The notes beneath the pieces are model-generated. The model did no database searches. It was not told the DNA's origin and was given only the letters and a program-made list of their open reading frames with translations. Of a stretch of 64,000 nucleotides of DNA, positions 3,601 to 45,166 are shown one piece after another. Position 1 is the stretch's first letter. Every line of letters begins with the position of its first letter. The position numbers and the translations under genes were made by a program. The stretch is from Monocercomonoides exilis PA203 (taxonomy: Eukaryota > Protista > Preaxostyla): NCBI GenBank assembly GCA_001643675.2, contig LSRY02000070.1, positions 1 through 64,000 on the forward strand. The letters run 5' to 3'.

Positions 3601-3938
3601 GAAACGAGTTATTTTGAACTCAGAAAGGCCTATCAGAAGGCATGCAATCAGAAAAGGAGGACGATATTTTCTTTCTTTTTGTAATTTGGAAGCTGAAAGA
3701 AGAACAAATAAAAAAGAAAGAGCATTAGATCAATCCCTTTGTGAAATGAATGAGCTCAAAAATAGCGTTCGGCAGGTTACACAACGTCACACGCCTTCAA
3801 TATATCGGAGAAGATGAAACGATGAGGGAAACTTATATATTTGAAAAGGCATATTTAATGGAAAATTCTATGAAAGAAGAGAATAAATGCCCGACAAGCA
3901 ATGTTGATTTCATCAAATACACATATTAGACGTATTCT

Positions 3939-13795: not shown

Positions 13796-14969
13796 GCGGA
13801 ATGAGAATAAATTTTAATTTGAAAAATTTTTATGTTTTCCGGATGATCAAAATCACCCTTAATAATTGTTTTTGAAAAACAATTTGAAAAAGATAAAAAA
13901 TCTTTCTTGCAACAATCATTTTGAGAGCGTTTGGAAAACATCAAAGACACTTTCATAGCACGCAATTTCTTCAGTTCTTGCAGGGTATGAATCGGCATTT
14001 GCTGCTGCATGTGATTATTTTTCATGAAAAAAAAATAACAATAAAAATAAACAACAAAAAATAAGAATGTGAAAATCAAGAGATGTGTATGCTCAAATGA
14101 ATGCTTCAAAAAACAAGAATCTTTCAAGGATCACTTGAATAGCAATTGTTAAATAAAATATTATCAGATTAAAATTGATTTTTTCGAAAAAGTCGAATTC
14201 TTCAAGTTTGAAGCATTGAACATATTGAAAATTAAATAAAATAAAATAAAAGCTTGTCAAACATAAATATTCTTCCAATAAAAAAGTACAAAAAAGTCGA
14301 ATAATGCCACATCAAAACACACACCCACAATAATTGCTCTTGAAAAAGTGTTCTTTCGAACCATAAAATGCCTCATCTCCCAATGCAATTTGATTGGCAA
14401 GTCTTTTTTCTTCATTTTCTCATCTCTTCGCTGAAAAAACATGAGGCAATAATCTTTCTTCTTCTTCTCCCTCTTTCTTTCTCTTCCTCTTCTCTCTTAT
14501 CTTTTTTTTTCTCCTTTCTTCTTCTCCTTTTTCCTCTTCTTTTCCTCTTCTTCTCCATTCCACCCTTCATATTCTCAATCTCTTTTGCCTTTTCTCTCAT
14601 CTTCGTCTTTATTCTTTCCCACAAACATCCAAATAAGCTCTTCTCTTTTGTTCGTCCTCCTCTTTCTTTCTCTTTCTCTTTCTCAATTTTTCTTTTTCTT
14701 TTTCTTTTTCTTTTTTTATTTTTTCCCATTCATTTTGTGCCATCAGCCAATGTTTGTTATTCAAATATACTCATCTGCTCTTCTCATCGACAAAAGATGT
14801 TTTTCAGAAATCCTTTGTTCTGATTGAAAAGCACATGAAATTTGAACTATTTCTGAACATATTCTTTGAGAAAAATTAGAAATAACAAAAAGATTTCAAA
14901 CAAATACATAAATACATTTTCTAAATTGTTATTGGAACTCATAAAAATACATTTTTCAAAATAAAAAAG

Positions 14970-15157
<188 letters not shown>

Positions 15158-15325
15158 CTATCTTTTTGCTTTTTCAAACATTTCTTCAAATTTTTTATCA
15201 TTCAAAAAAAAGAAAAAAAAACAATTTCATCTGCAAACAAACAAGTACACAATTTGTCCTTCTTCACCAACTCAGCATTTTCATTGCGAAATTCCAACAA
15301 TCACACCCATCTGCCTCTTCTGCCT

Positions 15326-16286
15326 TCACAATCTCTTTCTCCTCGCTTTCCTTCCTTCATTCGTTCTGCCTCCATCTCTTTCCTTCTCCCTCCCATCAAC
15401 CCCAATCCTTTCACTCTCTTTTCCTTCTTCTTCTTCTTCTTTGAATTCTTCATTCACATAATTCATTTTCAATTGCTCAAATAATGTTGCCTTTTCTTCC
15501 CATGCAATTTCTTCCAATATGGAACCACAAAAATACCAGAGGTTTTCCGACAAATCATGCGTCTTTGATAAAATCTGGCATATCTTCAAAAAGCCCTCAT
15601 TCAAAAATGCCTAAAAAGGGAAAGATAATGCGAAAGCGAATGGCACAGAATGAAAGAATAAATAATTCAAACCTCACAACGAATGCTGTGTGGTTGATGC
15701 CAACTGCTGTTCCAATCATTGTTCCTTTCAATAATAAGCAATCAATGCATTTTCAGCAAATCCAATAAAACTACAATTAAAATGGGAGAACGCTCAACGA
15801 AGAATGAAGGATTGAATTGAATTGGATTTTGACTTGGAAAACTGTTGAACGTTCAGAAATCTTTTCGACTTCGCTTTGCAAGCATAAAAGATTCATGGGC
15901 TATTAAAGATAACATCGAAAAAAAAATGGTAGAGCTCTCAAGGGGGTCCTCTGTCTCGGTGCACGGTGTTTGTTGTGTTTTGTAAAAATAAAAATCTGCA
16001 TCTGCTCCACTGTTGACAGCAATTTCGCTCTGACTGCTCAAAGGGGTAATGTCATTAAACTCTGCTTTAGTGCTTTGCAACTCTTCCGAATTTTGTTTGC
16101 TTGGGTTGTTGAACAGCTCTGGCTGAACGCGAATATGACTATGCTCCTTCCGTTGAAAAACAGCTCTTTCAAATCCTTTTGCTGCTGCACCTCCATCGCA
16201 AAAGAATGAGCAAAATTGTTTTTGTTTTTTTTCTTTTTTGATGCTGCTCCAGAAATAAGTTTTTGTTTGGATTCTTCAGGGATCAA
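15326..16286 (-). pseudogene. Mirror copy of the degenerate intron-containing gene at 22041-23001
   Basis: Exact mirror ORFs 16038-16286, 15853-16080 and 15326-15604. Confidence 0.3.
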
Positions 16287-16609
16287 AACATCTATTATGG
16301 TTTGTCAATAAAAACTATCACATAACAAATTATAATGAAATCGAATTTCAAAAGAATGAAATAGCATGTGCATATGCGTTGCATATTATGGCATATGCTT
16401 ATTATACGGGAATGTGAATAATTGAAAAAAACCAGGTTCGAACAAATGTTAAACAAATAATAATGTGATAATAGCAAACGACATTGATGGGAGTTCGTTC
16501 TGCATCGAAATGAAAAATCACAAAGTTTTTGATCAATACATTAAACTATTCAGTGAATGATTTGTGATCTTCAATTTTCAAATTTGATGGTAGCTCAGGA
16601 AAGAGAGAT

Positions 16610-17593
16610 ATGCTCGATGAGTGAGTTATAAGACATATTTCACAACGAAGATTTGACGTGAGATTGGTTTCACATGGTTTTTTTCAAAGGCGAGGTTTTT
16701 GTGTGCAAGAAATACCGAAGACGGATGACAATCCAAAAAGAACGATAAAAACAATAGATATTGGTACTGTTCTCGCTGCAAAATCAAAAAATTCTGTTTT
16801 TGATAAGGCTGTGTTTTCAAAAAGCAAAATATGATCGGGAAAAACTCTTTGAACTTTTTTGTTACAGTGGGTTGGAATTTCTATCAGCAAAACTGCAGAA
16901 TTAATTGGCATTATTCGCAATACAGTTGCATTTTGGGCAAGCATTTTAAGGGAAGTGTGCATGAAGATATGGAATTCGAAGCAAATTCATATTGGAGGAA
17001 AAGGAAAGAAAGTCGAAATCGATGAGGCTGTCTGGCGTCGAAGAAAGGATTGAAGGGGAAGAAGAAAAGAGCATATTTGGTTGTTTGGAAGAGTGGAAAG
17101 GCTTGACGGTGGAGGAGAAGGACCTCGATTTGTGATGATTGTCCCCAACAGAACAAAAGAAACCCTCCTTCCAATTATTCTTGAACACATTAAGCCTGAA
17201 ACCATCATCATGAGCGATGAGTGGAAGGCATACGAATGCTTGAATATGTATGGATATGAACACAGAACAGTGTGCCACAAAAAAAATTTCGTTGACCAGG
17301 TTACATAAGCATGCACTAACACGATCGAAGGTCTATGAGGTACTTTGCGAAAAGCGTTTCCACAGTATGGAGCTCGAAAGTCCCTAATTGCAGATCACCT
17401 TGCGATGGTTTTGGTCAAAGCCTCGAAAGAATACAATTTCTTGGAAATTTTGGAATTTGTCAATAAATACGAGATAGAAAATGAAAAACATGAGCAAGTG
17501 GAAAATGATTCAGAAAATAGCGAAAAAGAAACATCGGGCCTTTCACAAGATGAAGAAAAAAATTCTGATTACGAACACTCAAATTCATATATA
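16610..17593 (+). pseudogene. Merlin/ISXO2-like DDE transposase pseudogene
   Basis: Same-frame ORFs 16859-17053, 17081-17308 and 17345-17599 give IGGKGKKVEIDE, WLFGRVER, IKPETIIMSDEWKAY and HRTVCHKKNFVD..ACTNTIEGL*. Upstream WYCSRC Zn-ribbon-like motif. In-frame stops and 5' frameshifts. Start is approximate. Confidence 0.9.
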
Positions 17594-17736
17594 GGGTAAT
17601 TTATAATCGAGAAATTTTTTTAAAACCCGGACTTTTTTTTTAATAATAAGTTGATTTTTCCCACTTTTTATATTTTTTAAATTGTATTCAGTATATAAGG
17701 AAAAATCAATGACTGAATTTTTAGATTAAATGACTA

Positions 17737-18186
17737 CAGTCCAAACCGGATATAATCACGTCGAATATAATCACATTCGTATATAGTCACAATTTTCCAT
17801 GCACCGACATTTTTTGCTTGTTTTTCATTCATTTTTCATCGCATATAATCACAGGGCTGAAAATATATAATCACAATTTTTATCATTATGGGTGGATTTT
17901 TCAATGAAAAATCGATTTTTTGATCAAAAATCTCAATATTTCGCTTTTTCAAAAATGTGCTCAAATAATTCAAAATAATATGTATTTACGCAAAAAATTA
18001 ATTTCGCATGTTAAAAATGCGTTTTTATGAAGAATTTTCAAAAATTAAAAATTTGTCCCAAAATTAATTAATAAATAAAATAAAATTTATTTTTTTCTGT
18101 GTTAAGCAGCATCGTATATTATCACATTCGGATATAGTCACAAAAAGTTGTGCAAAAACCGATGTGATTATATCCGGTTTAGACTG
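17737..18186. mobile_element. 450-bp MITE (pogo/Tigger-type ends), copy 1
   Basis: TIR CAGTC(C/T)AAACCGGATATAATCAC (23 bp, 1 mismatch); TA TSD at 17735-36 and 18187-88; empty site in pogo copy 2 (~42349 ACTATACCTAA); repeated TATAATCAC/TATAGTCAC subterminal motifs. Confidence 0.93.
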
Positions 18187-18190
18187 TATA

Positions 18191-18273
18191 CCTAATCTCT
18201 GATGGGGGGAGATGGGGGGGGGGGGGGGTTGGCTCCTCCATCTCTGATTAGTGCCTCCCCTGAGGAGATTAGG
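18191..18273. other. GC-rich ~80-bp hairpin block upstream of the pogo-like ORF (possible tiny TA-flanked insertion or promoter/RNA structure)
   Basis: TA|CCTAATCTC...GAGATTAGG|TA inverted ends. Homologue at 42353-42427 has an inner stem GAGATGGAGGGG-TTTG-CTCCTCCATCTC. Confidence 0.5.
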
Positions 18274-18394
18274 TAATAGCAATGGGGCTAATCAAGTTAG
18301 AATTTAATCGGAAATATTTTTTTGATTTTTTTTTATTTCAAAAAAAAATTTTTTTTAAAAAAAAGAATTAGATCTTTACAAGAATTTTTTAGTT

Positions 18395-19849
18395 ATGAGT
18401 GTTGTTAATAATAAAAAAGAACGTGGACAGTTAATTCTTCGAGAAAAAATGATGTCATTTGACTTTCGAAGAATTGAAAATTGATTAGAACGCATGACAC
18501 GTATTGTCGTTGATGGACATGTCAGAATCGTTGATGCAATAAATACCAAAGAGTTCTCTCGTTCAGCAATAATTAGAGCAGTTTCAGCAATTGAAAGCGG
18601 CAGAGCTGTTGCAAAACCTGGTAGGCCAGAACTGTTCAATGAAGAGGACAAAAACATTATTGTTGGAGTTATAAAAATCGAAAGCTTCTCCGGAACAAGT
18701 TTAAATGCAAAGAGAACAAGAGAATTTGTTTGATTTCACATTTATTTATCTTTCGTTTTTTATAATGAATATTTTTCTGATGGAATCCGTCCTTTCCGAC
18801 AAAAAAACACATTCAGAACAAGAAAACAATGAAAATTCCAGTGTGTACAAATCATATCCATATCTATTTGTAAAAAGGAATTCTGAGCTCAAAGCGTCCA
18901 TGCCCAGAAATGTGGATATCCAACGTCTTTCAGTATCCAACGAACAAGCTGTTTTTCTTTTCTTTGAGCTTCTGCAATATCTTCATAATTCACATCATTA
19001 TTCACCTTCTTTGATCTTTATCACTGATGAATCTTCACTCCGCTTATCGGATTCCTTCAAAACTCTTGTGATTCACCCCACAGGAGTTCCAGCTGGATTT
19101 CATGCAACACACACACAAACATGCCAAATGCCAGTTTGGTTGTCGCAGCTGCTGCAGATGGATATTCTCTCAAAAGCGTTGTATTGTGGCCATGCCACAA
19201 ATTACCAAAGGAAATGCGAGTTCTTCTGAGCGCATTCATTGATGTTTGGGATAATAACGATGGATGAATGACGGAAAGCTTATTTCAAAGATACGCAGAA
19301 GAGGTTTTATTAACTGGAATCATTGAAAGAAGGGATATTTTAATGAGAGCAAATGACAGATGTCTTCTGCTTCTGGATTCTCACTCTTCTCGGGCTCAGC
19401 CTGACATATGGCAGAAATTTGCTGACAACAACATTGACGTCGTCACTTTTATTCCACATAGTTCACACATCACACAACCTCTTGATCGTGGTGTGTTTGT
19501 AGTCTTCCAGATATGCATCAACTCTCTGTACTCTGTGCCTCCAGATTCTTCCATTTCTCTTCGACGTGAGGAAATCTCCAACGTTCTTCCACAAGCTCTT
19601 CAGACAGCATTACTTCCTGCAACTGTTGTTTCTTCGTTCAAGAAAAGTGGCCTGCTTTCAAACGAGTGGCATTCTGTACAATCAACACTTTTAAAGGAAC
19701 CATTAGTGACACTGAAAAAGAGAACACTTAGGTTTGATTTTTTTGGAGAAATTATTACTGAACAAAAATTTCTTGAAGAATGGAAAAAAGAAAAGGAAAT
19801 GAAAGAAGATATGAAAAGAAAAGAAAAGAAAAAAGAAAACGAAGAATAA
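18395..19849 (+). pseudogene. pogo-like DDE_1 (DD35D) transposase pseudogene, copy 1
   Basis: ITDESS, DG*MT, LLLLDSHSSR and FIPHSSHITQPLDRGVF motifs; 35 residues between 2nd and 3rd Asp. TGA stops at 18482 and 19265, extra AC near 19110, intron acceptor mutated to CTG. Confidence 0.9.
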
Positions 19850-20313
19850 ATTCTTTTCGCAGCTGAAAAGCCCAAATAAAAGAAAATTTCGCAAATCAGA
19901 CATTTTGAATAATGATGTTTTAGACGATGAATCAAATCATAAAAATTCCAGAAAAATTATGAAGAGAGAACTTGTTGATTATATATATTATTAATCATTT
20001 CAATTTTTGTTATCAAAATATGATTGCAAGAAAAAAATATTTTTTTTATTTCGAACCAAAATAAAAAAAAGTCCGGGTTTATAAATCACACTATATAAAT
20101 TTTGTTATTTTTTCCCATTATATATTCATTTTTTTTAAGGTTTTTTTCCCACATCACACACTCATTTCCGATAAAAAAGAAATGCATGAATCTACACTAT
20201 TCCATATTAACAATTGCAATATACAAGAAAGAGAGGAATTCCAGCATTCCCGTATTTTTCAGCATATATCAAAATATGATTGTCGATGAAGAAAAAAAAA
20301 GAAACAGACAATA

Positions 20314-21727
20314 GGGTCAGTAATATATCGGTATTCATAAAAAAAAATCGGGACTTAAATTTTCTGTCTCTCCAGAGCACTTTTAGAAAAAAATAAATAA
20401 TAGGAAACCTTCTTAATGATTTTATTTTTAATTCCTGAAAATATTTTTATATTTTTTTATTTTAGTGAAAAGCTCTGGTGTTTTTTGTTTTATTTTTTCA
20501 GTTCAAAGACTTGCTCATATTTTCACGAGTTTTTTGTTTTGAGTGTTCTGAGTACAGTCCAAACCGGATATAATCACGTCGAATATAATCACATTCGTAT
20601 ATAGTCACAATTTTCCATGCACCGACATTTTTTGCTTGTTTTTCATTCATTTTTCATCGCATATAATCACAGGGCTGAAAATATATAATCACAATTTTTA
20701 TCATTATGGGTGGATTTTTCAATGAAAAATCGATTTTTTGATCAAAAATCTCAATATTTCGCTTTTTCAAAAATGTGCTCAAATAATTCAAAATAATATG
20801 TATTTACGCAAAAAATTAATTTCGCATGTTAAAAATGCGTTTTTATGAAGAATTTTCAAAAATTAAAAATTTGTCCCAAAATTAATTAATAAATAAAATA
20901 AAATTTATTTTTTTCTGTGTTAAGCAGCATCGTATATTATCACATTCGGATATAGTCACAAAAAGTTGTGCAAAAACCGATGTGATTATATCCGGTTTAG
21001 ACTGTATATCATTGTTGATTAACTGAACTTTTTTTTGTTTTTGGTTATTTTTTGCAATTAAACACTTCGTTTTTTTATTATTTTTTCCATTTCACTAAAT
21101 TTCAACAAAATTAAGAATTCACATATTTAAACAAAATATTTCATTATTTTTCAAGTTTAAATATAAAAACTATTAACACATAAAGGTGTTCAAAAAGAAG
21201 AAATTCTAAACTTTTTTATGATCGGGATTTTATTACTGAAAATCTTGTATTTGAGTATTTTTGTTTCGAAGGCCTTAAATTCAAATAATTTTTTTTCAAA
21301 ATGTTTGTAACGTTCATTTCAATCATTTTTTCACCGACTCAACGATATAAAAAAAACATAGTTATCATCGACTTTGCAAAATTTTTAATATATATTTTGT
21401 GAAATGCTAAAATTAATAATAAAACGAAGTGTTTAATTGCAAAAAATAACCAAAAACAAAAAAAAGTTCAGTTAATCAACAATGATATACTCAGAACACT
21501 CAAAACAAAAAACTCGTGAAAATATGAGCAAGTCTTTGAACTGAAAAAATAAAACAAAAAACACCAGAGCTTTTCACTAAAATAAAAAAATATAAAAATA
21601 TTTTCAGGAATTAAAAATAAAAGCATTAAGAAGGTTTACTGTTATTTATTTTTTTCTTAAAGTGCTCTGGAGAGCCAGAAAATTTAGGTCCCGATTTATT
21701 TTTTGGGTTCCGATAAATTATTTACAC
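20314..21727. mobile_element. Foldback-type non-autonomous element with ~310-bp inverted arms; left arm interrupted by the 450-bp MITE
   Basis: 20314-20554 plus 21007-~21075 is the revcomp of ~21420-21727. Ends TA|GGGTCAGTAAT... and ...ATTATTTACAC|TA resemble the pogo-like termini. Confidence 0.85.
20555..21004. mobile_element. 450-bp MITE, copy 2 (apparently identical to copy 1)
   Basis: Same TIRs; TA TSD at 20553-54 and 21005-06; empty site GATATACTCAG in the opposite foldback arm (~21484-21494). Confidence 0.93.
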
Positions 21728-22040
21728 TAAAAAAAAACAATTTTTTCGATTAATTTCAAAGAAAAGGATATTGCTATCTATCGTGGACTTCAAACTGTGA
21801 TTGAATGGAGTTTTTTTCATTAAAGAAAATGAAGAATGAAATGCAGAGAATGAACGGTTTTTTCAAAAAAAGAAACAATGATAATTGAAATTCTATAATT
21901 TTTAAAGAATCGTTCCGAAATGAATTCAGGAGAAATTATAATATGCAACGCATATGCACATGCTATTTCATTCTTTTGAAATTCGATTTCATTATAATTT
22001 GTTATGTGATAGTTTTTATTGACAAACCATAATAGATGTT

Positions 22041-23001
22041 TTGATCCCTGAAGAATCCAAACAAAAACTTATTTCTGGAGCAGCATCAAAAAAGAAAAAA
22101 AACAAAAACAATTTTGCTCATTCTTTTGCGATGGAGGTGCAGCAGCAAAAGGATTTGAAAGAGCTGTTTTTCAACGGAAGGAGCATAGTCATATTCGCGT
22201 TCAGCCAGAGCTGTTCAACAACCCAAGCAAACAAAATTCGGAAGAGTTGCAAAGCACTAAAGCAGAGTTTAATGACATTACCCCTTTGAGCAGTCAGAGC
22301 GAAATTGCTGTCAACAGTGGAGCAGATGCAGATTTTTATTTTTACAAAACACAACAAACACCGTGCACCGAGACAGAGGACCCCCTTGAGAGCTCTACCA
22401 TTTTTTTTTCGATGTTATCTTTAATAGCCCATGAATCTTTTATGCTTGCAAAGCGAAGTCGAAAAGATTTCTGAACGTTCAACAGTTTTCCAAGTCAAAA
22501 TCCAATTCAATTCAATCCTTCATTCTTCGTTGAGCGTTCTCCCATTTTAATTGTAGTTTTATTGGATTTGCTGAAAATGCATTGATTGCTTATTATTGAA
22601 AGGAACAATGATTGGAACAGCAGTTGGCATCAACCACACAGCATTCGTTGTGAGGTTTGAATTATTTATTCTTTCATTCTGTGCCATTCGCTTTCGCATT
22701 ATCTTTCCCTTTTTAGGCATTTTTGAATGAGGGCTTTTTGAAGATATGCCAGATTTTATCAAAGACGCATGATTTGTCGGAAAACCTCTGGTATTTTTGT
22801 GGTTCCATATTGGAAGAAATTGCATGGGAAGAAAAGGCAACATTATTTGAGCAATTGAAAATGAATTATGTGAATGAAGAATTCAAAGAAGAAGAAGAAG
22901 AAGGAAAAGAGAGTGAAAGGATTGGGGTTGATGGGAGGGAGAAGGAAAGAGATGGAGGCAGAACGAATGAAGGAAGGAAAGCGAGGAGAAAGAGATTGTG
23001 A
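22041..23001 (+). pseudogene. Probable degenerate intron-containing gene of unknown function
   Basis: Candidate intron GTTTGAATT...CCCTTTTTAG (~22655-22716) followed by AFLNEGFLKICQILSKTHDLSENLWYFCGSILEEIAWEE; stops in upstream segments; no recognisable family. Confidence 0.3.
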
Positions 23002-23169
23002 AGGCAGAAGAGGCAGATGGGTGTGATTGTTGGAATTTCGCAATGAAAATGCTGAGTTGGTGAAGAAGGACAAATTGTGTACTTGTTTGTTTGCAGATGA
23101 AATTGTTTTTTTTTCTTTTTTTTGAATGATAAAAAATTTGAAGAAATGTTTGAAAAAGCAAAAAGATAG

Positions 23170-23318
<149 letters not shown>

Positions 23319-24494
23319 CTTTTTTATTTTGAAAAATGTATTTTTATGAGTTCCAATAACAATTTAGAAAATGTATTTATGTATTTGTTTGAAATCTTTT
23401 TGTTATTTCTAATTTTTCTCAAAGAATATGTTCAGAAATAGTTCAAATTTCATGTGCTTTTCAATCAGAACAAAGGATTTCTGAAAAACATCTTTTGTCG
23501 ATGAGAAGAGCAGATGAGTATATTTGAATAACAAACATTGGCTGATGGCACAAAATGAATGGGAAAAAATAAAAAAGAAAAAAGAAAAAGAAAAAAGAAA
23601 AAATTGAGAAAGAGAAAGAGAAAGAAAGAGGAGGACGAACAAAAGAGAAGAGCTTATTTGGATGTTTGTGGGAAAGAATAAAGACGAAGATGAGAGAAAA
23701 GGCAAAAGAGATTGAGAATATGAAGGGTGGAATGGAGAAGAAGAGGAAAAGAAGAGGAAAAAGGAGAAGAAGAAAGGAGAAAAAAAAAGATAAGAGAGAA
23801 GAGGAAGAGAAAGAAAGAGGGAGAAGAAGAAGAAAGATTATTGCCTCATGTTTTTTCAGCGAAGAGATGAGAAAATGAAGAAAAAAGACTTGCCAATCAA
23901 ATTGCATTGGGAGATGAGGCATTTTATGGTTCGAAAGAACACTTTTTCAAGAGCAATTATTGTGGGTGTGTGTTTTGATGTGGCATTATTCGACTTTTTT
24001 GTACTTTTTTATTGGAAGAATATTTATGTTTGACAAGCTTTTATTTTATTTTATTTAATTTTCAATATGTTCAATGCTTCAAACTTGAAGAATTCGACTT
24101 TTTCGAAAAAATCAATTTTAATCTGATAATATTTTATTTAACAATTGCTATTCAAGTGATCCTTGAAAGATTCTTGTTTTTTGAAGCATTCATTTGAGCA
24201 TACACATCTCTTGATTTTCACATTCTTATTTTTTGTTGTTTATTTTTATTGTTATTTTTTTTTCATGAAAAATAATCACATGCAGCAGCAAATGCCGATT
24301 CATACCCTGCAAGAACTGAAGAAATTGCGTGCTATGAAAGTGTCTTTGATGTTTTCCAAACGCTCTCAAAATGATTGTTGCAAGAAAGATTTTTTATCTT
24401 TTTCAAATTGTTTTTCAAAAACAATTATTAAGGGTGATTTTGATCATCCGGAAAACATAAAAATTTTTCAAATTAAAATTTATTCTCATTCCGC

Positions 24495-27400
24495 ATGAGA
24501 ATGCATTTGTGCATTTTGGCATGTTTGATTCTTGGGAAGACATTTGAAGCACAGCATGTCTCTGGAGCTGCCACATTGGAGAACAAAGGTTTTCTTTCGA
24601 ATTGATATTTTTTCAATAATTCTATTTATTTTTGGCAAGGAAACTCAAATGATGCACAATATCTATCAGAGGCTGAATACAATTATTTATTTGAACAGAA
24701 TTCATTGTCAGGAGTGAAAACACCGCAGTCAGGTCTTTCTACAGTGAAAAACACATTTTTGGGATTTCGCAATTCTACAGTTGAACTGAAAAATGTGGCA
24801 ATTGAACATTCTTCCTCGCCATTAATGCTAATAACAGATAAATCGAGTGTTGTGTTGGATTCCTGCATTTCTCACCAAAAAACAGCATCTCCTTTTCATT
24901 TGCAAAGTGGGTCAATCTTCCTCACAAATATGAGATTGATCCCCCCAAAGAACCTGAACCCTTCCAGCCTCATATTTTCATCTGATGATTCAAATATTGC
25001 TATTTTGAGAAATTCCGTCATGGCAGATCTGACTATTTCATCATCAAACTATTTCCTATTGTCTGGAAAGAGCCAAAATGAACAGATTAATAACTGTGCA
25101 TTCAAGAACATTTCTGTGAAATATGCCTCGAATTGCGATCATTTTGTGGAACATTCATGTTTCCGAAGTTCAATGGAGAACTGCCTCATTTATTCGTGCG
25201 TGAATGTCTTTGAAGGAGGGATATCGAGTGGATCATATTCTTATCAGGAATTCATCTGCAAAAATATGACAATAAACTTCGGGAAAAGAGAAATGAATGC
25301 TCTTCAGAAAAAGGAAAAACTGAACACAACAGAAAGCCAATCCTTTTCATCGTGCGAATGGGAAGATTGCACAGCACCACAAGGAGGGGCTCTTTATGTT
25401 CATGATAATGAAAATGCCATTTTGACAGTTGAAAATTCTTCTTTTGTAAGATGCAATGCATCATCTACAAAAGGTGGTGGAATATATGCATTGAATATCG
25501 CAGAATGCATTGTTATTCATTCTTCATTTTCTCAATGCACAGCACAGATAACCACTGATTATGGTGGAGGAGGAATAATGATCGAGAATGTCAACTTTCA
25601 ATCAATGGTTGAAGATTGCTCTTTTCAAAACTGTTCCTCTGGCAATGATGGAGGGGCAATTGATCTTCGCCCAACGATGACAAAAAGACAGAAGCAATGC
25701 ATTGTTAATTCACTTTTTATTAACTGCCGATGCAACGGATCATCAGGTGGAACAGGAGGCGCAATTGAACATTGGGTTGCAAAGGATAAAGTTGCAATTT
25801 CAAATTGCCTGTTTTGTCATTGCTATTCGATGAGTGGAGCAGGCGCTGTATGTCAATCAATAAATTCAAATAATAATGGAACATTGTTTTTCTTCTGTTT
25901 CTTCCACAATAACACATGCATTCTTGGTGGCCATGACATTGCTCTTCATGATTCAACAGCAAACAACATTGATTCCACCTGCTATTCCACCAGACAAACA
26001 GAGAACAGGGTTAGCACAAGTCATCGTTTTATTGCTGATAAAAGTGAATGGCTGCGAAATGATTTTGGAAGAATTAGATATGTCTCCTCAGTACAAACAG
26101 AACCTAATTCCATTGACACATATGCATGTGGACGAGATGAAGGCCATCCTTGCAACACCATCAGCCATTGCCTCACTCAGCTGATCCCAGAATTTGTCAC
26201 AGATATTGAGATACTGACAGGAACGATTACAGAGACAAAAAGTATGAATTGTGACATCAATGCTTACAAAATATATGGCCAAAGCAATATGAGCACAGCA
26301 ATCCAAACAGAATTTGAAACATCAGGGTTATCTCTTTTTTCAGTCTCCACAAGCACATTGACTGTCAGTGACGTTATTCTTGTGCATGACTCGGCTCATC
26401 CGAATAACCGTAGGTCAAGGCTGTTTGAGATTAGTGGAACAGGAGGAATGAGGATCAGCAGACTGAACATATCTGCCGGAAGTGAGCAATCAACAGAAAC
26501 AGCATTCACCACAGAACTGATTAATGTGCGGGATGGGGTGTTTCAGATGGAAAATGTGAACTGGGCAAAGACGATTTTTACAGCTTCATTATTTTTGCTT
26601 TCTTCAACAAATGAAATATCAGTGGCACTTTCAGAGTGTGCCTTTGATGGGATTGAGAGAACAACAAGCGGAGCAGCTGTGATGTCGTTTTCGAATGCCA
26701 AGGCAAACATTGATGTGAATACGAGCACTTTTGAAAGATGTGGAAGTTTAAGTTCAGAAAATGGAGGATCGATGATGTTGTGTGTTGGAAACGAAAATGA
26801 AGTGAAATTGAAAGGCGGATCTTTTGATGGGTGCTTTTGTTCGTCATCCAATGGTCTTGGGGGAGGAATCCTTCTTCGATTGTTGAATGAAAATCCAGAA
26901 TTCCTGATTTCTTCTTTATTCGGAACAAACACAGCCAGGTGGGGAAGAGATATCTTTATCATTTCACCAAATTTGGAAGTGACTGCAAAGTCACAAAAAA
27001 TCACATGTGTGATAGCCTCTTTGGATTCTTTTGACAAAGTGCAAGGATATGACAATGGAAACACCAGTTTGGTCATTCCTCTTTGCATCTATCTCCTTCC
27101 CACTCCAGAAGAAGTATATGTGACAAGTACCGAGGCATCTGACCATTCCCATTGTGGAATCGCCCAATTCCCTTGTTTGACAATGAAACACTCCCTCACA
27201 AGGCAAACAGGGCCAAAGAAAGTTGTTGTGAATGGAATGATTATGATGAGTGATGAATTGACCTTTGCTGATCAGAAACATGAAATAAGAGGAAATGATG
27301 ATAAAAGTGGTTGGAAAGTTTCTGATTCAAGTTCCATATCCAATTTAGCGATGATAACAGCAAATGTTGTAACAGAATTATCAAAACTCATCTTTTCTCT

Positions 27401-30400
27401 TCCTCCTTCTCTTTCATCACACTCCATTTTCATTTCATCTTCTTCTTCTCAAGTGACTCTGTCTCAATGTTCTCTTTCTCTTCAAAAACCTTCATCAGAA
27501 TTGACATTTTTATTCTTATCAGTTGAGACAGGGATCCTGATAATCGACAAATTCTCAGCTTCATCGATTTATTTGAGGAGAAATCCGCTGATCTCGTTGA
27601 CAGGAAGCGGAACAAATACAAAGTTGGTGGACGCTCTGTGGCTGAACATGACGAAATGCAATTTCACAAAAATCGAAAGAGCAGCTGGAAATGGAGGCTG
27701 TGTGAGCATAGACAACAGCGATGATGAAAATACAAACACACAAATAAATATTGAAGAATGTGATTTTGATGAATGCTCTGTGCTTGCTGATGAAAGCAGA
27801 GGAGGGGCAATCAATGCTCAGCTGAAAGGGAATACTCAATTGAATATTGTTTCGTGCACATTCACAGGATGCACAGCACCAGCAGAAGAAGAGAAGATTG
27901 GCTTTGGTGGAGGGATGGCGCTGAAGTTGATTGATGAATATTCTTCATTTGTGATATCATCCCCTGTTTTTGATTTGGAAAAACCAAATATTGCAAAATA
28001 TGGAAATGATCTTTTTGTTGAATCATCCAACTTGACGAAGAGCATCACAAATGACTCACTTCCATATGTTTCTGAGCATCTTGCTGATATTTCATTGAAT
28101 TCAATGAGAGGATTTGATGGAAATGATACAGCGAATGCAATTCCACTGGTCAATTTCTGGCGAGCGATTGGATCAGAGATATTTGTTGGAGGTGAAGGGA
28201 AAGATATGGGTGCCTGTGGATTCTCAGATTATCCTTGCCTTTCAATTGATTATTCACTAACACGATTGCTTGAAGGAAATGAAAGGATTATCAGCATCAT
28301 TGGAAAAGGAATTCTTCAGAAAAGTGTTGATCTCAGCGGGGTTTCAATAAATTCGAACGACAGTGAAGCCTGCTCTTTGGAATGTCTCTCTTCAGTTGAA
28401 GGAACAGAGGAAGAAGCAATGAAGATTCAGGGCATTACCAATTTCGAACTGATAAACTTTGTGATTCCATCTTCATTCACAAGTGGAGTTAATGTTCTGA
28501 TGCATGTTGGCGCAAGCGATGGATTATTGACTGTGAAAGATTGTTCATTCACAAAAATTGAAGAAAGTGGAGAAGACATGATCAACTTTGGGCTGATCAG
28601 AGCAGATGGAGGAACAGTTCAATTGGAATTGGTGACAATGCAATCGCTGTCTTTTTCAAAGGATGTTATTTCTGTTTTGTCAATAACGATTTTGAGTATC
28701 AAAAACATAACGATGAAGAATGTTGATCTGGAGGGAGCAAGTGGATTGAGCATTTCAAAGAGTTTAAGAAGAGAGAGAAATGAAGATAAACAAGACATTG
28801 TTGTTGAGTGGAGTTTATTTGAAGAAGTGACTCAAAACACAACAGAAAACATCTCGATCATTCGAAATGAAAATGATAATCCATTGAAAATAGTGATTCG
28901 AAACACAACGATGAAGAAATGTGGAGGGTTGAAGTGTGGAAAGGGGGGAGGGATGCTTTGTGTGTTGAATGAGGGAGGAAGCTTCGACTGCTCATTTTGC
29001 ACGATATCTGAGTGCTTCTGCTCCACCACAGGAAGAGGTGGTTGGCTGTTTCTTGAATGCACCTCGAAAGATGAAATGCCTCTGAACTTTGTGTTATCGA
29101 ACATCACATTCAGAGGCAATTCTGCATTCAGAGGGAGAGACGTGTATGTGAGATGCCACTCAATCGATTCACAAATAATTGACGAACAATTCTTGTTGGA
29201 TTTCAGAGCACCATTTGTGAAAGACCTGGCGATATGGGGATGCACATCGGACTCGTTTGTGGGAGAAGAAGATCTTCTGCTGAGAGTCGTAAGATACCAG
29301 AGCGAGACGATCTTTGTATCTTCTGTTGATGAAAATGCAACAGATAGCAAGCAATGTGGAGAGTTTCATTTTCCTTGTGAGTCATTGGATGCTGGAGTGC
29401 AACACATCATCCCTTCACGCTATTCGCAGCTGTTGATATCGGAGCAAACAATCATCAACGGAGAATGCAGTGTGCAGAATGTTAGCATTCACTCATTGGA
29501 AACTCCCTCAGCTGCTTTTGTGTATCTGAACTCAACAATTGATGGGGATGTGGGAAACATCATCACAACAACAGAGATTGTTCGGATTGAAAGATTGAAA
29601 TTCAATTTTGATCAGTCATTTTCCTATTCAGGCAGTTCTCTTATCCATGAAGCAAAAGGCCAGCTCTCTCTTTCATTTGTTGATTTTTCTTCGACATTTG
29701 CATCAGAAAACATTGAAGCTGTTATTCTAAACTCAACATTGCTGAGCATCGAATATGGAATTGTGCACGTTGACAACTGCTTAGTATCGTTCCTTTCATT
29801 CAAAAAGCCATCATTATTGTTTAATGGCGATGAGATAAATATTACGAATGTGAAACTGGAACAAATTGAAGCAACAACAAATGTATTTGAGATTGGACAA
29901 TGCAAAGAAGTTGTATTAAATAGAATTGATACAAATGGAGTGAATCTGTCTGAAGGTTGCATCATTGTGATAAACGATTTGCCATCAGGAACAGTTTCTA
30001 TTGGAATCTCCTCATTCAACAACTGTTCAAGACATTCAGAAAGCGCTTCAATTCTCTCAGCTTCATCAACGTCTGCTCATTTGGAGTTTTCAAACTGTTC
30101 TTGCACAAATTGCAATTCCTTGTCTGACAAAGGAAGTGTTGTTGAGGTTTATGATATGAAGGATGTTTCGATGCACATGTGTGAGTTTGAAGGAGTGCAA
30201 ATAAAAGAAATTGAAAAAGAGAGAAATAATAATTATGAAGAAATATGTGAATGGAATGGATCACTTGTCCATTCAGCAAATTCTTCGTTGGTAATGAAGG
30301 ATGTGATTATTTTGAATTCTTCATCGGGCGGATTATCATTGTCATCTGGAGATGTGACAATCGAGAAAGGAGAGTTTATGAACAACAATCCATTCATTGA

Positions 30401-32234
30401 AAAATATCCCTCGGCTCGGAGAAACATCATTTGCTCGGGTCCTTCCTCACTGACCATTTCAAGCTTGAAAGGGGGTGACGGACAAGAGAAGAATTCTTCT
30501 CTTTGGATTTTGAATGATGGATGCACTCTCGAAGGATTAGCAGGAGAAAGGTCATCGCCTTTCTTCATTCCCAAATTGGAAGATGTTTCAGTGAACGAAA
30601 ATGGAAGTCATATTGTTGTGAAATTCGAGGGATCTCTTTTTGTGCCTTGTGACTTGTCATTCAAACTTGTATATAAAACAGGGGATGTGGAGTTGGTCGA
30701 GACATATCAGTTTGAGGAAGACAGTTTCATATCAGAAACTGAGGTGATTGGAAGAGTTCCATCAGAAAATATTTCAAAGACAGGAGATGAAACAGAGGTG
30801 TCTGTGATGATTTTGTTTGGAAAACAATTGGCTTCCACTTCTCCACAGATACTGAAGAACAAAACAGAATCAAATGACAAAGGAGATGAAAGGATTGTTG
30901 AAGGAGGAAAAGAAGGGAAATCATATTGGTTGTTGATTGTGATTGTTCTTGTTGTGATAATATTGATTGTTCTCATCGTCGCAATAGCCTTTATTGTGAG
31001 ATGGAGAAATTCAAAAGAAGAAGCTAAAAAATACAAGGAGATAGTTGATGATAATATTAAGAAGGATCCGAAGGTGTTTGAGATGGTGACAATGGAGATG
31101 TCTCCCGAGGAGCAGTGGAGAAGAGCAGAGAAAGAGGCAGAGAAGAAGAATGAAGAAAGGATAAAGAAGAGAATATACGAGAAAAGCTTGGGACATTCAG
31201 AGTCATCAGAGCATCTTCTGTCTGAGAGTGGTTCAACTGAATACATCCTGGGGAGAGACTCAGACAAGATCCCTCAATGGGTTCTGGAGAAGGTTGAGGA
31301 AGAAAAGATAAGGAAGCGAACTCCATCGCCTTCTATTTCATCAACATGCTCAACTGATTCTGATTCAACATTTGTTCGAGAGGAGGATCTGTGTCCAACA
31401 ACCTCATCGATGTCTAATCTCGTGGACGCAATGGCCTGTTCATCGCCTCATGAGAAGCTGATTGTGGATCTGAGAGATTCACTGTTCATGTTGCTTCATG
31501 GGAGGAACAAGACAAAGGAGATGGCGATTGGGACTCTGCAGGAGAGGGAGCAGACAGCTGCCCAAATCCTGTTCTGGGTTGCGAATGGAGCTCTCCACTC
31601 CTTTGATGAAATGGAAAATTCACTTCAATCATTAGCCAATTTGAGTCCTCACATTGTATTGTTCTCTGAGCACATGGTCATCTGCATTGTTATGCATTCA
31701 GATCTTTTATCAGATGACTCTGATTCTTCTTCCATCTCCTCATCAACTGTTGTGACTTCTACCAGCGATGATGATGATGAAGACTCTCTGCCCTCATCTG
31801 CGTTTGAAGAGGATGATTATTACAAAAAAGAGTGCCTGAGGTGGAAGGCACCAGAGCTGTTGATCAACAAGAAGATGGGAGCAACAAAGGAGTCAGTGTC
31901 ATTCTCGATTGGGATGATGCTGTGGGAGTGCTTGACGCTCCAGATCCCGTTTGGCGATTATGAGGCAGAGGTGGCAGGACAGAAGATAGCGAATGGAGAG
32001 AGACCGAACATGGAGATAATTAGTGAATCTCGAATGAAGGGAATGGTTGAAAAAGCGATGAGCATGAACGCAGAGCATCGCCACTCATTGTCACAGATCA
32101 AGCGGGAGTTTGTGGAATTGTTTCCGCAAAGTGCAATGGTATTCACAATGACAGATGCGATCTGTTTGGTGGGACGAAGTGAGAGAATTGATTCTGCAAA
32201 CGAAAGAGAATCTGGAGATGCATTTAATTTGTGA
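24495..32234 (+). CDS. Receptor-like protein copy R, ~2562 aa: signal peptide, Cys-rich pectin-lyase/Pmp-like beta-helix ectodomain, single TM, degenerate protein-kinase-like domain
   Basis: Exon 1 24495-24588 (MRMHLCILACLILGKTFEA..., signal-like); 51-nt intron 24589-24639 (GT..AG) joins in frame to the 2509-aa ORF. Repeated GGA(I/L) and FxxC/N motifs, CG....PC module starts, TM WLLIVIVLVVIILIVLIVAIAFIV (~30927-30998), then RWKAPELL, FSIGMMLWECLTLQIPF and GERP. Confidence 0.92.
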
Positions 32235-33602
32235 TGATGTTTGTTGGCTTTGAACTGTTTGATTTTGAAGTGATGTTGTTGGATCAAAATTGTTTTTCTG
32301 CCTGTCTTTGGCTGTTATTCTTCTGTAATTATCTTTTTGCTCATGATCAAATATGGACTTTGGAATATGTATTTTTTGGAAAAGAAATAAAAAATAGAAT
32401 AATTGTGTGGTTTTATGTTTTCATGTGGAATTTTCAGTTATTTGTTTTTGTTGTAATTGTATGAAACACTTCTTTTTGAGAGAGTTGAAGAATTGAAATT
32501 TATTTGTTCGCTTGCGTATTCCCTGATGAGAATCCCAGGCCTCTGCACATCATTCAGCATTTGCAAGTTATTTTATGTGTTTTTGTGAAAAATCTGACTT
32601 TTATTTCTACATTTATATTTTTTCGTTATTGACTGAATGTTGGAAATTGAAAGAGATTTTTCGTTCATGAATAACCAACCTCAATTGAAATATTATTTCT
32701 AAGATTTTGCAATTTGCATTTGTTTTGTTCTGTTTTGTTGCAATTCTGATCAAAGATTAGCAGTTGAAATGGTTTATTCCAGATTTTATTAAAACTGTCA
32801 ATTTTTTGATAAACCTTTTTTCGTTGCTCATTGCTCGTCACTAATTTGTATATTCATGTAACTCTTTCACATTTGTAACTCAATTGTTTATATTTCAAAT
32901 TCATTTCATGTTTTCATTCACCCAACTTGTTTTAAGGTTTTAATTTTTTCCACAATTCAAACAAATAATAAAATATTGATTCAAAGAAATTAGAAAAACA
33001 AACTTTGTCAGCGAACAGACAGATTCCAATGGCCTTTTTTGAGATCCAGGAGATGAGTGATTTTCAATTACCAAGCTTCAATCTGTCCAAAAACAATCTT
33101 TCAAATAAATCCAATTTGATTCAACTTCCAATTTTAACTGGAGATAAAGAAGCATGAGGCTTGGTTCAATACAAACGAAATTCACTCTGATGTTGCATTA
33201 TTTTTCGTTTTTATTAAAAAAAAGATTCAAATTGAACGTCACAATTTCGGTGATTTTTTCTTTTTTCTATTTAAAAAAAAAACACAAAATAAAAAAATTA
33301 AAATTTATATTAAGTTTGAAATAACTAATAAGGATTGAAAGAAAGAATTGTTTTACAATTTCTTTTGAAACAATATTTATTTAACTAAAAATGTATTTAT
33401 CGTTTAAATTAATTTTTGTCTTCAAAAAATAAGCAAGCAACTCGTTTTCTTTTGTTCATTCCTCTCAAAAAGCAACGCCAAATCACCGCTCCAGCTTTGC
33501 TGCTCAGCAACAACACCAAACGGAACACAGAATTATGAAACAGCAAATGCAACCAAGAACAACAACTGTCTCATTTATACTCCATGCTCCAAAAGAACTT
33601 GT

Positions 33603-34359
33603 ATGGAATCTTCTGCGAATACACTTCGTTCTTCTTTTATTTTATCGTTGTTATGTTATTCTTCCTTAATATCATCTTCCTCCTCCACCTCCCCTGCCCT
33701 CTCCCTCTCTCTCACCAACTGCACCATGACCAACATCAACTCAGAACAGTTCAGCCAACAGGCTGCCACCAATGGCGGATGCATCTCATTCGCCTCATCT
33801 GTCCCTGCCAACTCGTTTTCAGTAAGTGACACAAATATCTCCACCTGCTCTGTGAGCGAGGATACAAGTTCTGGAGGAAGAGGCGGTGCTCTCATGATCG
33901 AGTTCAATGAAGGCTCACAAGTGTCAGAATCCTCCTTTTCCATCACCAATATTGTGTTTTCAGCCAACAAGGCCAGCGTCGGAAGAGATGTGTATTTTGT
34001 GCGTGAATCATTTGTCGCTTCTGTGAAGGAACCCTTGTTCGCCTTCATGGGAAGCATCACTCAGAAAGACAACTCAGCTGTTGGACATAACAGAACAGAA
34101 GCGATTGGAATTTCGATTTATAAATCTTTATCAACGGGAATACAGCTGACAATGGACATGTGGATGGAATGCCTTGCATCAAAGCAATAAATTGCTGGCT
34201 ATCAAAGATGCACCGCAAGAGGACACGCAATGCGAAGGGGCTTCTGAAGAAGGTGCAGATCATAAGGCTGATATTATTTTATGCGATGATTTGTCGGTGA
34301 AAATATGTGCAAACGAAGGCAAGGTCGAAGAAAGTTGGGGAGATGTTATACAAAATTGA
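33603..34359 (+). pseudogene. Fragment of a beta-helix/GGA-repeat surface-protein paralog (right-arm copy)
   Basis: Mirror of 3939-4695; the same disruptions are present in both arms. Confidence 0.6.
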
Positions 34360-37300
34360 AGAATACGTCTAATATGTGTATTTGATGAAATCAACATTGC
34401 TTGTCGGGCATTTATTCTCTTCTTTCATAGAATTTTCCATTAAATATGCCTTTTCAAATATATAAGTTTCCCTCATCGTTTCATCTTCTCCGATATATTG
34501 AAGGCGTGTGACGTTGTGTAACCTGCCGAACGCTATTTTTGAGCTCATTCATTTCACAAAGGGATTGATCTAATGCTCTTTCTTTTTTTATTTGTTCTTC
34601 TTTCAGCTTCCAAATTACAAAAAAGAAAGAAAATATCGTCCTCCTTTTCTGATTGCATGCCTTCTGATAGGCCTTTCTGAGTTCAAAATAACTCGTTTCA
34701 TTGGCGCGTCACTTTTGCTGAATTTTTGCGAGTGAAGGAATTTTTCTTTTTCGATTCTAAATGGAAATGATAGATGAGGCCTGAAGTTGAATTTGGGAGG
34801 AAGTTGAATGAAATGAAAAAAACATCATTATTTTTGTTGATCATCGAAGAAGACGTTGAAGAAGAAGAAGAAGATCGCAATGAAATGAATTTGCCAAAAG
34901 GATATTTCATCTTCAGAATTGTGAATGAAAAGTTTCAAGAAGGCTCATTCATCCATTTATCAGAAGAGTCGAAGAAAAGCGAATAAAACAATTATTTGAT
35001 CTATTTGTTTAAGCCTCTCATTGAATGGCAAAAGCACATCAGAATCAAAGCGTTTCAACTTAATGCTGAATAAAATGAAATAACAAATATTGAAGTTGAA
35101 GGAGAATATTCAAGCAGAGCAAAGAATAACGAAATCATGCTTTAAATACGATGTATTTGTTTCACTTTTTATAATTTTGAAGTTACGAGGAATAAGAGGA
35201 AGAAGAAGAAGATAATGATGATGCGTTAACTAATGAAATGGTAGCGAAAGGATGAGAAGAAGAAGAAGAAGAAGAAGAAGAATAGAATTTTTTAAGAGGG
35301 ATACGATGTGCAACTTTATTGACAGTGTTGTTTTTATTGAATTAAGAATTGCCAATGAAGGCGAGCAATCACAAGAAATTGATAGAAATTGAAGATATAA
35401 GCTGAAGCTATGAAGAAAATGTCGAAGGGGGAAAAGATGAATTAACAGAAGAAGAAGTGGAAGAAGTGGAAGAAGAGGAAGAGGAAGAAGAAGAGGAAGA
35501 AGAGGAAGAAGAAGAGGAAGAAGAGGAAGAAGGGAGAATTGAAGGTATTGAAGGAAGAATAAGTTGTAGAGAAGATAAAAATTAGAATGAGAAAAGGAAG
35601 AATGCGAAGATTCCACCATCATCTTTCACAAAAGGTTGGATTTTCTTATCGAAGAAAAGGATGATGAAGTTGTTACTAACGCAGATGTTGATGATGATTA
35701 TGATTTATCATTTCCTTCATTTTCTTCATTTTCTTCTTCTTCTTCTTCTTCTTTATAACGATATTTTCTTCTTCTCTTTCTCTTCATCTCCTTCTCCTTC
35801 TCCTTCTTCTCCCTCTTCTCCTTCTTTTCCTTCTTTCCCTTTCTTCCCTTTCTTCCCCTTCGTCTTTCTCTTCTCTCTCTTCTCTTTCTTTTCCTTCGCA
35901 TCTGTCAGCAAACTCTCTTCACTGATGAAGCCTTTCCATTCAGTTTGATGTCTCTTTTCTTCATCCTTAAGCTTTTCAACATCAATGGAATATCACCCAG
36001 TGTTATTCAAGCGATTAAACTGTGCTGGTTGAAGGAAAGGTGGAAAGACCCTTTCAAAGGCAGTTGACGCTAAAAACACAGGAAGACAAGCACAACGAAG
36101 ACGAACGCATTAACAAGCGACTGCATTTTCCTTGGATGGACTTGGTGATAATCTACAGAAAGAACTAGTTTTGAGTGAAAAATTTTAAAAATTTGCAAAA
36201 GAAATCAGAAAAGAAAAAGAAAGAAAAAGAAAAAGAAAAATAAGAAATTCATCGATACAATGCAATTCTAAAATGAGACAATGCCTTTTTATAAGAAAAC
36301 TCGTCTTCTCGCCTCTCTGATTGAAGAAGTCTGTCTTTTAACATATCTTCCCCGTCGTTTCTTTTTATTAACTGAAGTCAAAAGAGCAACAATTCAACAC
36401 AAAATGAAAAAGTGAAAAAGAAAACATGAAATTATCATTGCAAAAAAAGGAAGATTTATTTCAATTTTTTGAAATTACCTTCTTTCTTATTTAAATAAAA
36501 ATTGTTTAAATGTAACATAAATTTGATAATACACCTTAATATAATCAAGCATTTCAATTGTAGTCTGGTCTGTCTTGTCGGGTTCGCTTCGGCATCGCTC
36601 GAATTATTTCATGACTTGCTCAGAAATCCACTCTGAAATCGGAGAAACGATGAAAATCAGCAAAACAACCCAAAACGATGAATTTCAACAAAATGCAACA
36701 AGAGTCTTTACAGATAAATACACATTAAGTGGAAATCACCGTCAAACGATAAATGCGTTGAAATGAATTCAAACTCCTGAATGTGCTTGTTTCTGCATGT
36801 TGTATAAATCTTCCTTCGCCATCTCGAGTTTTGTTCATCTTTATATTGCTTCAAAGCCTTTTGGAATAGAATCTCTTTCATAACACGATTTGCGTTGATG
36901 TCCATTGTGGTTATGAAACTGCCTCTAAGAAATCCAACTATCATTCGCCCGAGCTTCAAAAATACGTGGATTGATGAAAGCTTGATTCCCTTCATCAATC
37001 CTCCTTCATCCTGAACAACCCACTCAAGAAAGGAACTAATGACAAAAGTATCCTTATAGCTTGTAGCTTCACTCAACATATTAATTTTGAAGCAACCACA
37101 GAAGCCAGTAAATGCTTTGATATAACATAAAAAATCATTTTGATGAAATAAAGCCTCAATATTACTCTAAATGTTAGCACATAAATTAAAACATCAACGT
37201 TTGTTTTTTCATTTGGAGGGGAATGAAGTATATGCACGATTAATGAACAAACTGTTGCTTTTTTGTCTCTTCTTCCAAATGTTCTTTTCAAAGTCTTTTC

Positions 37301-37662
37301 TTTTCTTCTTCATGTGGTCAATAATGTTAAAATAGAAAAATAATGATATTTGAAGTCAACTATATGTGGCAAATATCCCAACATGTTCAAAGTTTTCAAT
37401 CGAAATTCCATCCATTTCAATGAAATGAATTATTGTTGGCTCGATCACAACGAAATTTAATTCTTTCGTATTCGACTTAATATAGCCTGTCTCGTTGGCT
37501 TCTTTGTGATTTCTTTTTTAACATAGATTTTTTTTCAACTAGTCAAAGGAATTGAGTTTGGACTTTATCTTTGTTTTGTCAATTTTCGACAATATTGTTT
37601 TTGTTTTTCTGTTTTTCATTTGAAATTTTGCGGCAAGTTGATCTTTACTAAAAATAGACAGA

Positions 37663-44248: not shown

Positions 44249-45166
44249 TATTTCAATATCAGTCAAAAATTTTTCGATAAATTTCATCAGTTTTGAGGCC
44301 GTTTAAACAAAAAACATAGAATGATTTCAATTATTTATTGTTCAACAATTGAGTATTACAATAAATATTCAATTGGTCGAAATTTTTTTTTTTAAAATAG
44401 TTTCTTTTGTTTTATTTTAAGGTTAAAAGGAAAAATAAATATTCACTTCAAATATTCATTCCAACACACAAAATATCACCAGCATAAAAATAGTGTCATT
44501 GTCAAGCATTTATTACCATTCTTATGATATTTGGCGAGTTGGAATGAAATTATGAAGATAATATTTAATTTTTATTTTTTCCAAAGAAAAATAATAAATG
44601 GAACCTTGTAATAAAAAATAAGACGAAAAATGAAAAGAGCAATAACTATTCAGCTTCATAAATATATCCTGGTTTTTTGAAAAAAAAACTAATTTTTGCA
44701 TTAATAACACTTTATTATGAACATCAATTGAACTTGAAAATGGTTCAACTTTGGATTATTTGGTTTGTGGATAAGTTGATTTTTATATTTTTTGCTGAGC
44801 CATTCATATTTATGGTTTTTAATAATAACTTTTTTTATAAATATACATATATTTGTAACAATTTTTTTTTTTTGTTTTGTTGAATTTTGATGTTGTTTGA
44901 AAAAAAAAATCTTTAAATGAATATTCGATTGTTTTCAATTTTGTGAAACGTTGAAAAAAGAAAAATAAAACATTTGAGTTACAAAAAATGAAATTCATTT
45001 TCTCGAACATTTTCATCAAAAATTGATAATTTTTCAGACAATCCAATAAAAATTATCAATCAAAAAAAGCTCCAAACAGGAGTTTGTTTATCAAGGTAAT
45101 GATACAAAAAGAAAAAATGAAAAGAATTGAAATATCGAGTCGTAGTGCATAAGGGATTTCATTTTC

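Follow-up and report, generated by a model that had tools for sequence, protein, structure and literature searches.

Twin receptor genes in a palindrome of Monocercomonoides exilis carry a patch probably left by gene conversion between paralogs

How do two copies of a receptor gene that are otherwise the same come to differ by about 18% along a single stretch? The question is raised by bases 1-64000 of the Monocercomonoides exilis contig LSRY02000070 (226,867 bp), which make up the window of 64,000 nucleotides analysed here. The assembly is nanopore-based and was polished with Nanopolish and Pilon, and the assembly paper (PMC8767320) states that multi-copy DNA was polished less well. Two inverted arms of 16.4 kb (1-16389 and 21938-38338) harbour one receptor gene each, and inside the receptor gene mirrored positions p and q obey the rule p+q=38290. 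The right arm (21938-38338, forward strand) is probably the original site, since it is continuous with an older segmental duplicate at MONOS_11673. The left arm (1-16389, reverse strand) is poorly polished and runs off the contig start, so that the arm length seen here is a minimum. The initial annotation described the arms as essentially the same over about 16 kb, and this was borne out: outside the patch only 14 substitutions were found, almost all of them located in simple repeats or close to the end of the contig, together with about 40 short indels, mostly of 1 base and denser toward base 1. The indels look like unpolished nanopore errors, and one of them, at ~13410, is contradicted by the reads. 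Upstream of each gene lies a long (TTA)n microsatellite (23172-23318 and 14975-15155), whose length differs by 13 units between the arms.

The right receptor gene (24495-32234, forward strand) contains a GT-AG intron of 51 nt (24589-24639) and encodes ~2562 aa. The product has a signal-peptide-like start, a long ectodomain of predicted beta-helix type with four Cys-capped points and GGA/FxxN-type repeats, one transmembrane segment recognised by hydropathy (30912-31004, forward strand) and the C-lobe only of a kinase domain. The left gene (6059-13795, reverse strand), annotated as MONOS_18362, displays five 1-bp frameshifts in DNA shared by the arms. These are probably assembly errors, and at least one of them is, because the reads restore the missing base at ~13410. 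The public model of MONOS_18362 bridges the frameshifts with small apparent introns and places the start too far downstream; an intact gene is probably represented incompletely by this model.

The spacer between the arms (16390-21937) consists of transposon remains. A degenerate Merlin/IS1595-type transposase (16390-17700; Pfam DDE_Tnp_IS1595, E 9e-13) begins exactly at the left-arm end, with a 9-bp near-repeat at the junction (16381-16398), and a Merlin-type element may have seeded the duplication; a complete copy with its two ends and a flanking target duplication was sought at the arm end and was not found. Two 460-bp MITE copies (17731-18190 and 20549-21008; 99.8% identical) have terminal inverted repeats and TA ends, and their relatives lie at another locus (L004:22235-22927) and at 60729-60804 of the window. 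A broken DDE_1 (pogo-like) element occurs twice (18187-20100 and 42349-44257; 93% identical) and has a 69% relative in another locus (L003). An element with ~240-bp inverted ends (20312-21729; ends 94% identical), within which a MITE is inserted, has relatives upstream of family genes at the MONOS_11673 and MONOS_6927/6932 loci (L001 and L007). Beyond the palindrome, 51478-56403 (reverse strand) encodes an unrelated type I membrane protein of 1641 aa with tandem beta-helix-like modules of ~360 aa, an EP-repeat stalk and a short, kinase-free tail. Some stretches of its modules are repeated exactly, and the protein may be mosaic between its own repeats.

The twin genes diverge at 25438-27085, as first noticed, with 296 substitutions, no gaps and differences at 123 of 550 aa. 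The patch is made up of three tracts separated by two identical islands; the coordinates given are on the forward strand of the right copy. Tract 1 (25438-26067, mirror 12223-12852) differs at 161 nt and at 66 of 211 aa, a count that the initial annotation had exactly right. Tract 2 (26174-26625, mirror 11665-12116) differs at 95 nt and 44 of 152 aa and is itself a composite in which the nearest paralog changes from piece to piece, and tract 3 (26882-27085, mirror 11205-11408) differs at 40 nt and 13 of 69 aa. The islands, which had also been recognised, measure 106 bp (island 1, 26068-26173, mirror 12117-12222) and 256 bp (island 2, 26626-26881, mirror 11409-11664). They would occur by chance at the local difference rate with probabilities of 8e-10 and 1e-22, respectively, and they show at least 12 and at least 33 differences from every paralog fetched.

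Synonymous sites differ as well, in agreement with the earlier claim. The dS was 0.80 in tract 1, 0.54 in tract 2 and 1.0 in tract 3, compared with ~0 in the flanks of the patch, and the corresponding dN/dS values were 0.26, 0.32 and 0.09, the changes of tract 3 being mostly at silent sites. Such values (0.09-0.32) indicate purifying selection on the patch and not fast amino-acid change. Hypermutation or fast positive selection in place was rejected as an origin of the patch, as silent sites differ more than replacement sites. The twin-twin tree distance in tract 1 was 0.96 against a family median of 0.81, which places the twins as far apart as random members of the family. Being family-distant inside the patch and identical in its flanks, the twins could not have acquired it in place, and the sequences point to old paralog sequence that was imported. 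The hypervariable look of the patch stems from its overlap with the module that varies most among the members of the family.

A divergent patch in a poorly polished arm could also be a product of assembly, either as a chimeric consensus or as two alleles or distant loci joined in a false palindrome. Unpolished indels are present in the left arm, which is situated at the beginning of the contig, and multi-copy parts are those that received poorer polishing (PMC8767320). No piece assembled from reads covers the whole patch or connects it to the spacer, and the palindromic arrangement thus rests on the assembly. The patch itself was sought in public runs of 2016, 2022 and 2024 from two studies, which contain 57-78% of the sampled left-region words; run X1 comes from a separate and independent 2024 study, while X2-X4, of which X4 is the 2016 run, may be the assembled sample. 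Contigs built from the reads were placed on the left copy at 10500-13500. Left-specific DNA was matched with zero mismatches at 12329-12882 (X3), 12411-12882 (X2) and 12329-12716 (X4), and zero-mismatch contigs bridged 12852 (X1, reaching 73 bp into shared DNA), 12223 (X1) and 11205 (X2 and X3), so that each of the outer borders and one border of an island are covered. In a 2016 contig, the right-copy variant continues across island 1. Contig depth was 109-141 in left-specific and 219-303 in arm-shared DNA for X3, and 25-34 against 63-98 for X2; the ratio is taken from single contigs, summed depth giving no copy number, and is consistent with one versus two copies. Left tract 1 was recovered as an unbranched 554-bp contig at one-copy depth, and the islands were at approximately two-copy depth, not three.

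The bridging contigs and the ~1x versus 2x depth led us to reject a polishing chimera, and the collapse or polishing artefact that the initial annotation had named as a possible refutation was not encountered. A pair of alleles is unlikely, the organism being reported as monoploid (PMC6759080). Nor could a consensus error produce tract 1, whose sequence differs from that of all paralogs while keeping the frame and the Cys/Gly motifs. Taken together, an assembly artefact is very unlikely. The same left sequence was detected in the 2016, 2022 and 2024 runs, and no other variant was seen in the left-specific tracts, contigs being prone to drop rare variants. The left variant was also found in RNA runs, as contigs only, and its presence in an RNA library is not proof of transcription.

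If the patch was imported, its sources may be recognisable among the relatives, which by protein search were M. exilis paralogs. The longest piece of the left copy (11949-12130, reverse strand) is identical over 182 bp to MONOS_11673 on contig 27, whereas the right copy differs at 31 sites. A second piece (11834-11962, reverse strand) matches MONOS_13035 on contig 20 at 126/129 bp, with the right copy differing from the left at 30 sites, and beyond this piece the left copy resembles MONOS_6927 and MONOS_13200. A third piece (11331-11401, reverse strand) is an exact 71-bp match to MONOS_12599, located ~100 kb off on the same contig as the twins, and here the right copy differs at 13 sites. Exact or near-exact pieces were thus shared with four paralogs, MONOS_11673, MONOS_13035, MONOS_12599 and MONOS_6927, all of them annotated genes of 2310-2566 aa. 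The runs shared with MONOS_11673, MONOS_12599 and MONOS_6927 were reached in 0 of 2000 permutations (p<0.0005); the permutation ignores the clustering of conservation, and shorter runs therefore weigh less. In trees of successive segments (FastTree distances) the nearest neighbour shifted from segment to segment. The initial annotation had proposed segmental gene conversion and suggested a BLAST search for a near-100% match inside a third paralog; the 182 bp of MONOS_11673 are such a match, and this exact tract, at p<0.0005, supports the proposal.

Tract 1 is different, in that no exact donor for either copy was found among ~190 family proteins, assembled from three protein searches covering 154-4390 aa. 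The best DNA matches to tract 1 of the right copy were 85/89 bp (MONOS_4548) and 70/73 bp (MONOS_2244), and the events there are accordingly older. The import into tract 1 is thus old, or its donor has been lost or overwritten. The idea that one intact paralog supplied the patch in full was rejected, as no such donor occurs among the ~190 proteins and the islands are present in about two copies and not three. When MONOS_11673 serves as the outgroup, the older state is seen in the right copy for three sub-tracts and in the left copy for one.

Exchange was not confined to the patch. Both twins share an exact tract of 182 bp with MONOS_12599 (27437-27618, forward strand) and one of 369 bp with MONOS_11673 (29865-30233, forward strand), both in the stalk. 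The stalk, transmembrane segment and tail, described at the outset as invariant, are thus unchanged between the twins but mosaic relative to other paralogs. Identical runs of at least 80 residues were found between non-twin paralogs from tip to tail. An older duplicate of the entire region is found at MONOS_11673; its non-coding DNA differs from the right arm by ~1-4% where divergence is lowest, and its gene is 87.5% identical to the right copy overall, with patches from 0 to 27% different. The inverted pair MONOS_6927/6932 on contig 1 is 92% identical, with patches from 0 to 31% along the gene. Among the other close pairs, four were essentially identical, tip included, and the others showed patches over the full length of the gene. 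Divergence involved the tip module in 7 of 7 patchy close pairs, a modest hint of a tip bias, which is confounded by the higher family divergence at the tip.

Several related patterns were seen elsewhere. MONOS_11673 and MONOS_12599 have an exact 426-bp stalk tract in common. Outside the receptor gene, 32500-34500 and 36500-37000 differ from the MONOS_11673 duplicate by a patchy 12-28%, beside stretches of 2-4%, and other repeated families may have been converted likewise. MONOS_9923 and MONOS_10021 show the reverse of the twin-gene pattern: located on different contigs and 81% identical overall, they have tip modules that are 98% identical, with 13 mismatches over 750 bp.

These observations bear on the idea of a dedicated diversification system, which the initial annotation had entertained by analogy with Borrelia vlsE and the mosaic VSG of trypanosomes and in which the tip would be overwritten by programmed, targeted copying from donors. 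A mosaic of several donors that is gap-free, in frame and membrane-distal fits such a programme, as does the near-whole tip module common to the two unlinked paralogs MONOS_9923 and MONOS_10021. However, exact tracts were spread over stalk and tail and not gathered in one cassette, and three of the four donors fetched at the DNA level are annotated full-length genes and not silent cassettes. Flanking repeats or recombination signals were sought at the patch borders and none were found, no single expression site was evident, and the left sequence persisted from 2016 to 2024, as far as contigs retain variants. With exchange gene-wide, borders free of repeats, purifying selection and a tract 1 without an exact donor, the claim of a dedicated vlsE/VSG-like system was not supported, and we consider programmed overwriting very unlikely.

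What the patch encodes was approached through the family and a structural model. The twin genes belong to the TKL family, as judged from 120 matches listed, all of them MONOS proteins, and from a Pfam PK_Tyr_Ser-Thr match (31824-32108, forward strand). M. exilis has 320 TKL genes, its largest family (PMC6759080), and this family overlaps 'unclassified repeats' (PMC8767320). The Pfam match is confined to the C-lobe (profile positions 164-257 only); of the hallmarks of an active TKL kinase that were sought, the N-lobe, the HRD loop and DFG were absent, the motifs being replaced in the family by xLSPH and MHSD. The sequence therefore suggests a pseudokinase tail. The structure predicted for ORF residues 191-815 (pLDDT 84) consists of two modules with the three-strand coiled fold of a right-handed parallel beta-helix, and its best PDB matches were PL6 alginate lyases and phage tailspikes (E 5e-6). 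In the model, tract 1 corresponds to coils 2-6 of the first module, the coils being assigned by hand from secondary structure. Among 51 close paralogs the core of tract 1 had the lowest identity of the ectodomain (55-56%) and the deepest dS (1.55), and a second region, ORF aa 1791-1890, was nearly as variable. Family entropy was highest at outward PB1 positions (1.87 bits) and in T1 loops (1.47), compared with 0.51 in T2 turns. The outward PB1 face and the T1 loops usually form the binding groove in lyases and tailspikes. By analogy, the PB1/T1 surface of the receptor tip is a putative binding groove, and the first beta-helix module is likely the specificity site of the family. The initial annotation had suggested checking whether variable residues share one face of the helix, and in the model this was only partly so: outward PB1 positions do vary, but PB2 positions differ between the copies too. 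The tip module was also matched by unnamed metagenome proteins (26-40% identity) and one Streblomastix protein, and is on that account older than the M. exilis expansion.

Selection at the tip is possible, given that the tip module is the most variable part of the family. Selection might keep the tips apart while arm-to-arm conversion homogenises the rest, a 'peak of divergence' as conceived for the red/green opsin and RHD/RHCE genes (PMC3924837). Such a process fits imported pieces and would account for their persistence, and the low family identity and deep dS of the tract 1 core, the entropy peak on what is usually the binding groove and the divergent tips of all seven patchy pairs are in line with it. 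On the other hand, dN/dS at the tip (0.19-0.26) was no higher than elsewhere and showed no excess of amino-acid change, the changes of tract 3 are mostly silent, four twin pairs are identical at the tip, and ORF aa 1791-1890 comes close to the tip in variability. Divergence by itself, without selection, can also block conversion, and the age of the palindrome is not readable from its arms. We regard this explanation as unlikely, while giving it some weight. The broader proposition, that conversion is preferentially targeted to, or preserved at, the tip, and that palindromic twins hold two specificities on one scaffold as a germline-like generator of a receptor repertoire, is doubtful and somewhat less probable still.

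The patch is probably what ordinary ectopic gene conversion within a large receptor family has left uncorrected, and the mosaic is visible because the palindrome is otherwise homogeneous. The history of the locus may be depicted as follows. A region with one receptor gene came to be present as an inverted pair. M. exilis is described as monoploid and without NHEJ, with mismatch repair and a fairly complete HR (PMC6759080), and breaks would for that reason often be repaired from paralogs; outside S/G2, a broken receptor gene would have paralogs alone as templates. From such templates, 77-87% identical, pieces of ~50-750 bp may be copied in register. The left patch is a chain of pieces with different nearest paralogs, of the kind seen gene-wide in the family. 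The twin arm would be the best template and erase differences, while other paralogs would add them; the likeness of the arms elsewhere would reflect a young duplication, the removal of differences by arm-to-arm conversion, or both. Once an import made a stretch ~20-30% different, arm-to-arm correction might fail there and imports pile up, both arms having taken in pieces over time. Alternatively, one repair event with several template switches could give the same picture, some donors having changed or disappeared in the meantime; in yeast, template switches between diverged repeats have been reported (PMC4215184). About five pieces within 1.65 kb of a 7.7-kb gene would be expected in ~1% of cases if they were independent, by simple arithmetic, and an extra step is therefore needed: escape from correction, a multi-template event, or selection. 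The outcome would be a pair of receptors that differ at the tip and probably bind distinct glycans or surfaces, microbial or host, which would amount to two specificities.

The conversion mechanism is well known from other gene families. Interlocus conversion in the opsin and RHD/RHCE genes (PMC3924837) likewise leaves duplicates that are the same but for a sharply bounded region, with exchange in register, whereas the M. exilis patch is a mosaic of third-party paralogs and not divergence in place. Palindromes of Y and W chromosomes (PMC3403216) also have near-identical, gene-bearing inverted arms, a unique spacer and no allelic partner, but the arms of M. exilis carry one 18% divergent patch. 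Trypanosome mosaic VSG (PMC3708902) and Borrelia vlsE (PMC2779866) are similar in outcome, being surface-protein mosaics built from several donors by segmental conversion; they differ in that no dedicated expression site, silent archive (as judged from annotated genes), flanking repeats or, in contigs of 2016 to 2024, fast switching were found in M. exilis, and in that exchange here is gene-wide and among apparently intact genes. The predicted right-handed beta-helix is shared with pectate-lyase-like proteins and, together with repeated GGA(I/L/V) and FxxN-like motifs and a transmembrane anchor, with the Pmp adhesins of chlamydiae and trichomonads (PMC6701047). The M. exilis receptor is unlike the latter in being much longer and Cys-rich, with several capped modules and a putative pseudokinase tail, and the Pfam model of Pmp did not match it. 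The available sections of the papers on the TKL family (PMC6759080, PMC8767320) describe no beta-helix ectodomain, loss of catalytic motifs or gene conversion, and a literature search on gene conversion in Monocercomonoides and oxymonads returned no relevant paper. The most fitting category for the patch is interlocus gene conversion among the members of a large family of surface receptors, here located in a palindrome that carries genes.

The locus offers a clean view, supported by reads, of the way in which a family of ~300 giant receptors diversifies. The identical arms set a zero baseline that makes it possible to name imported pieces and several of the paralogs they came from. Monoploidy and the loss of NHEJ are joined to a testable prediction, namely that breaks are repaired from paralogs, and the first beta-helix module is flagged as the likely specificity site of an uncharacterised receptor family.
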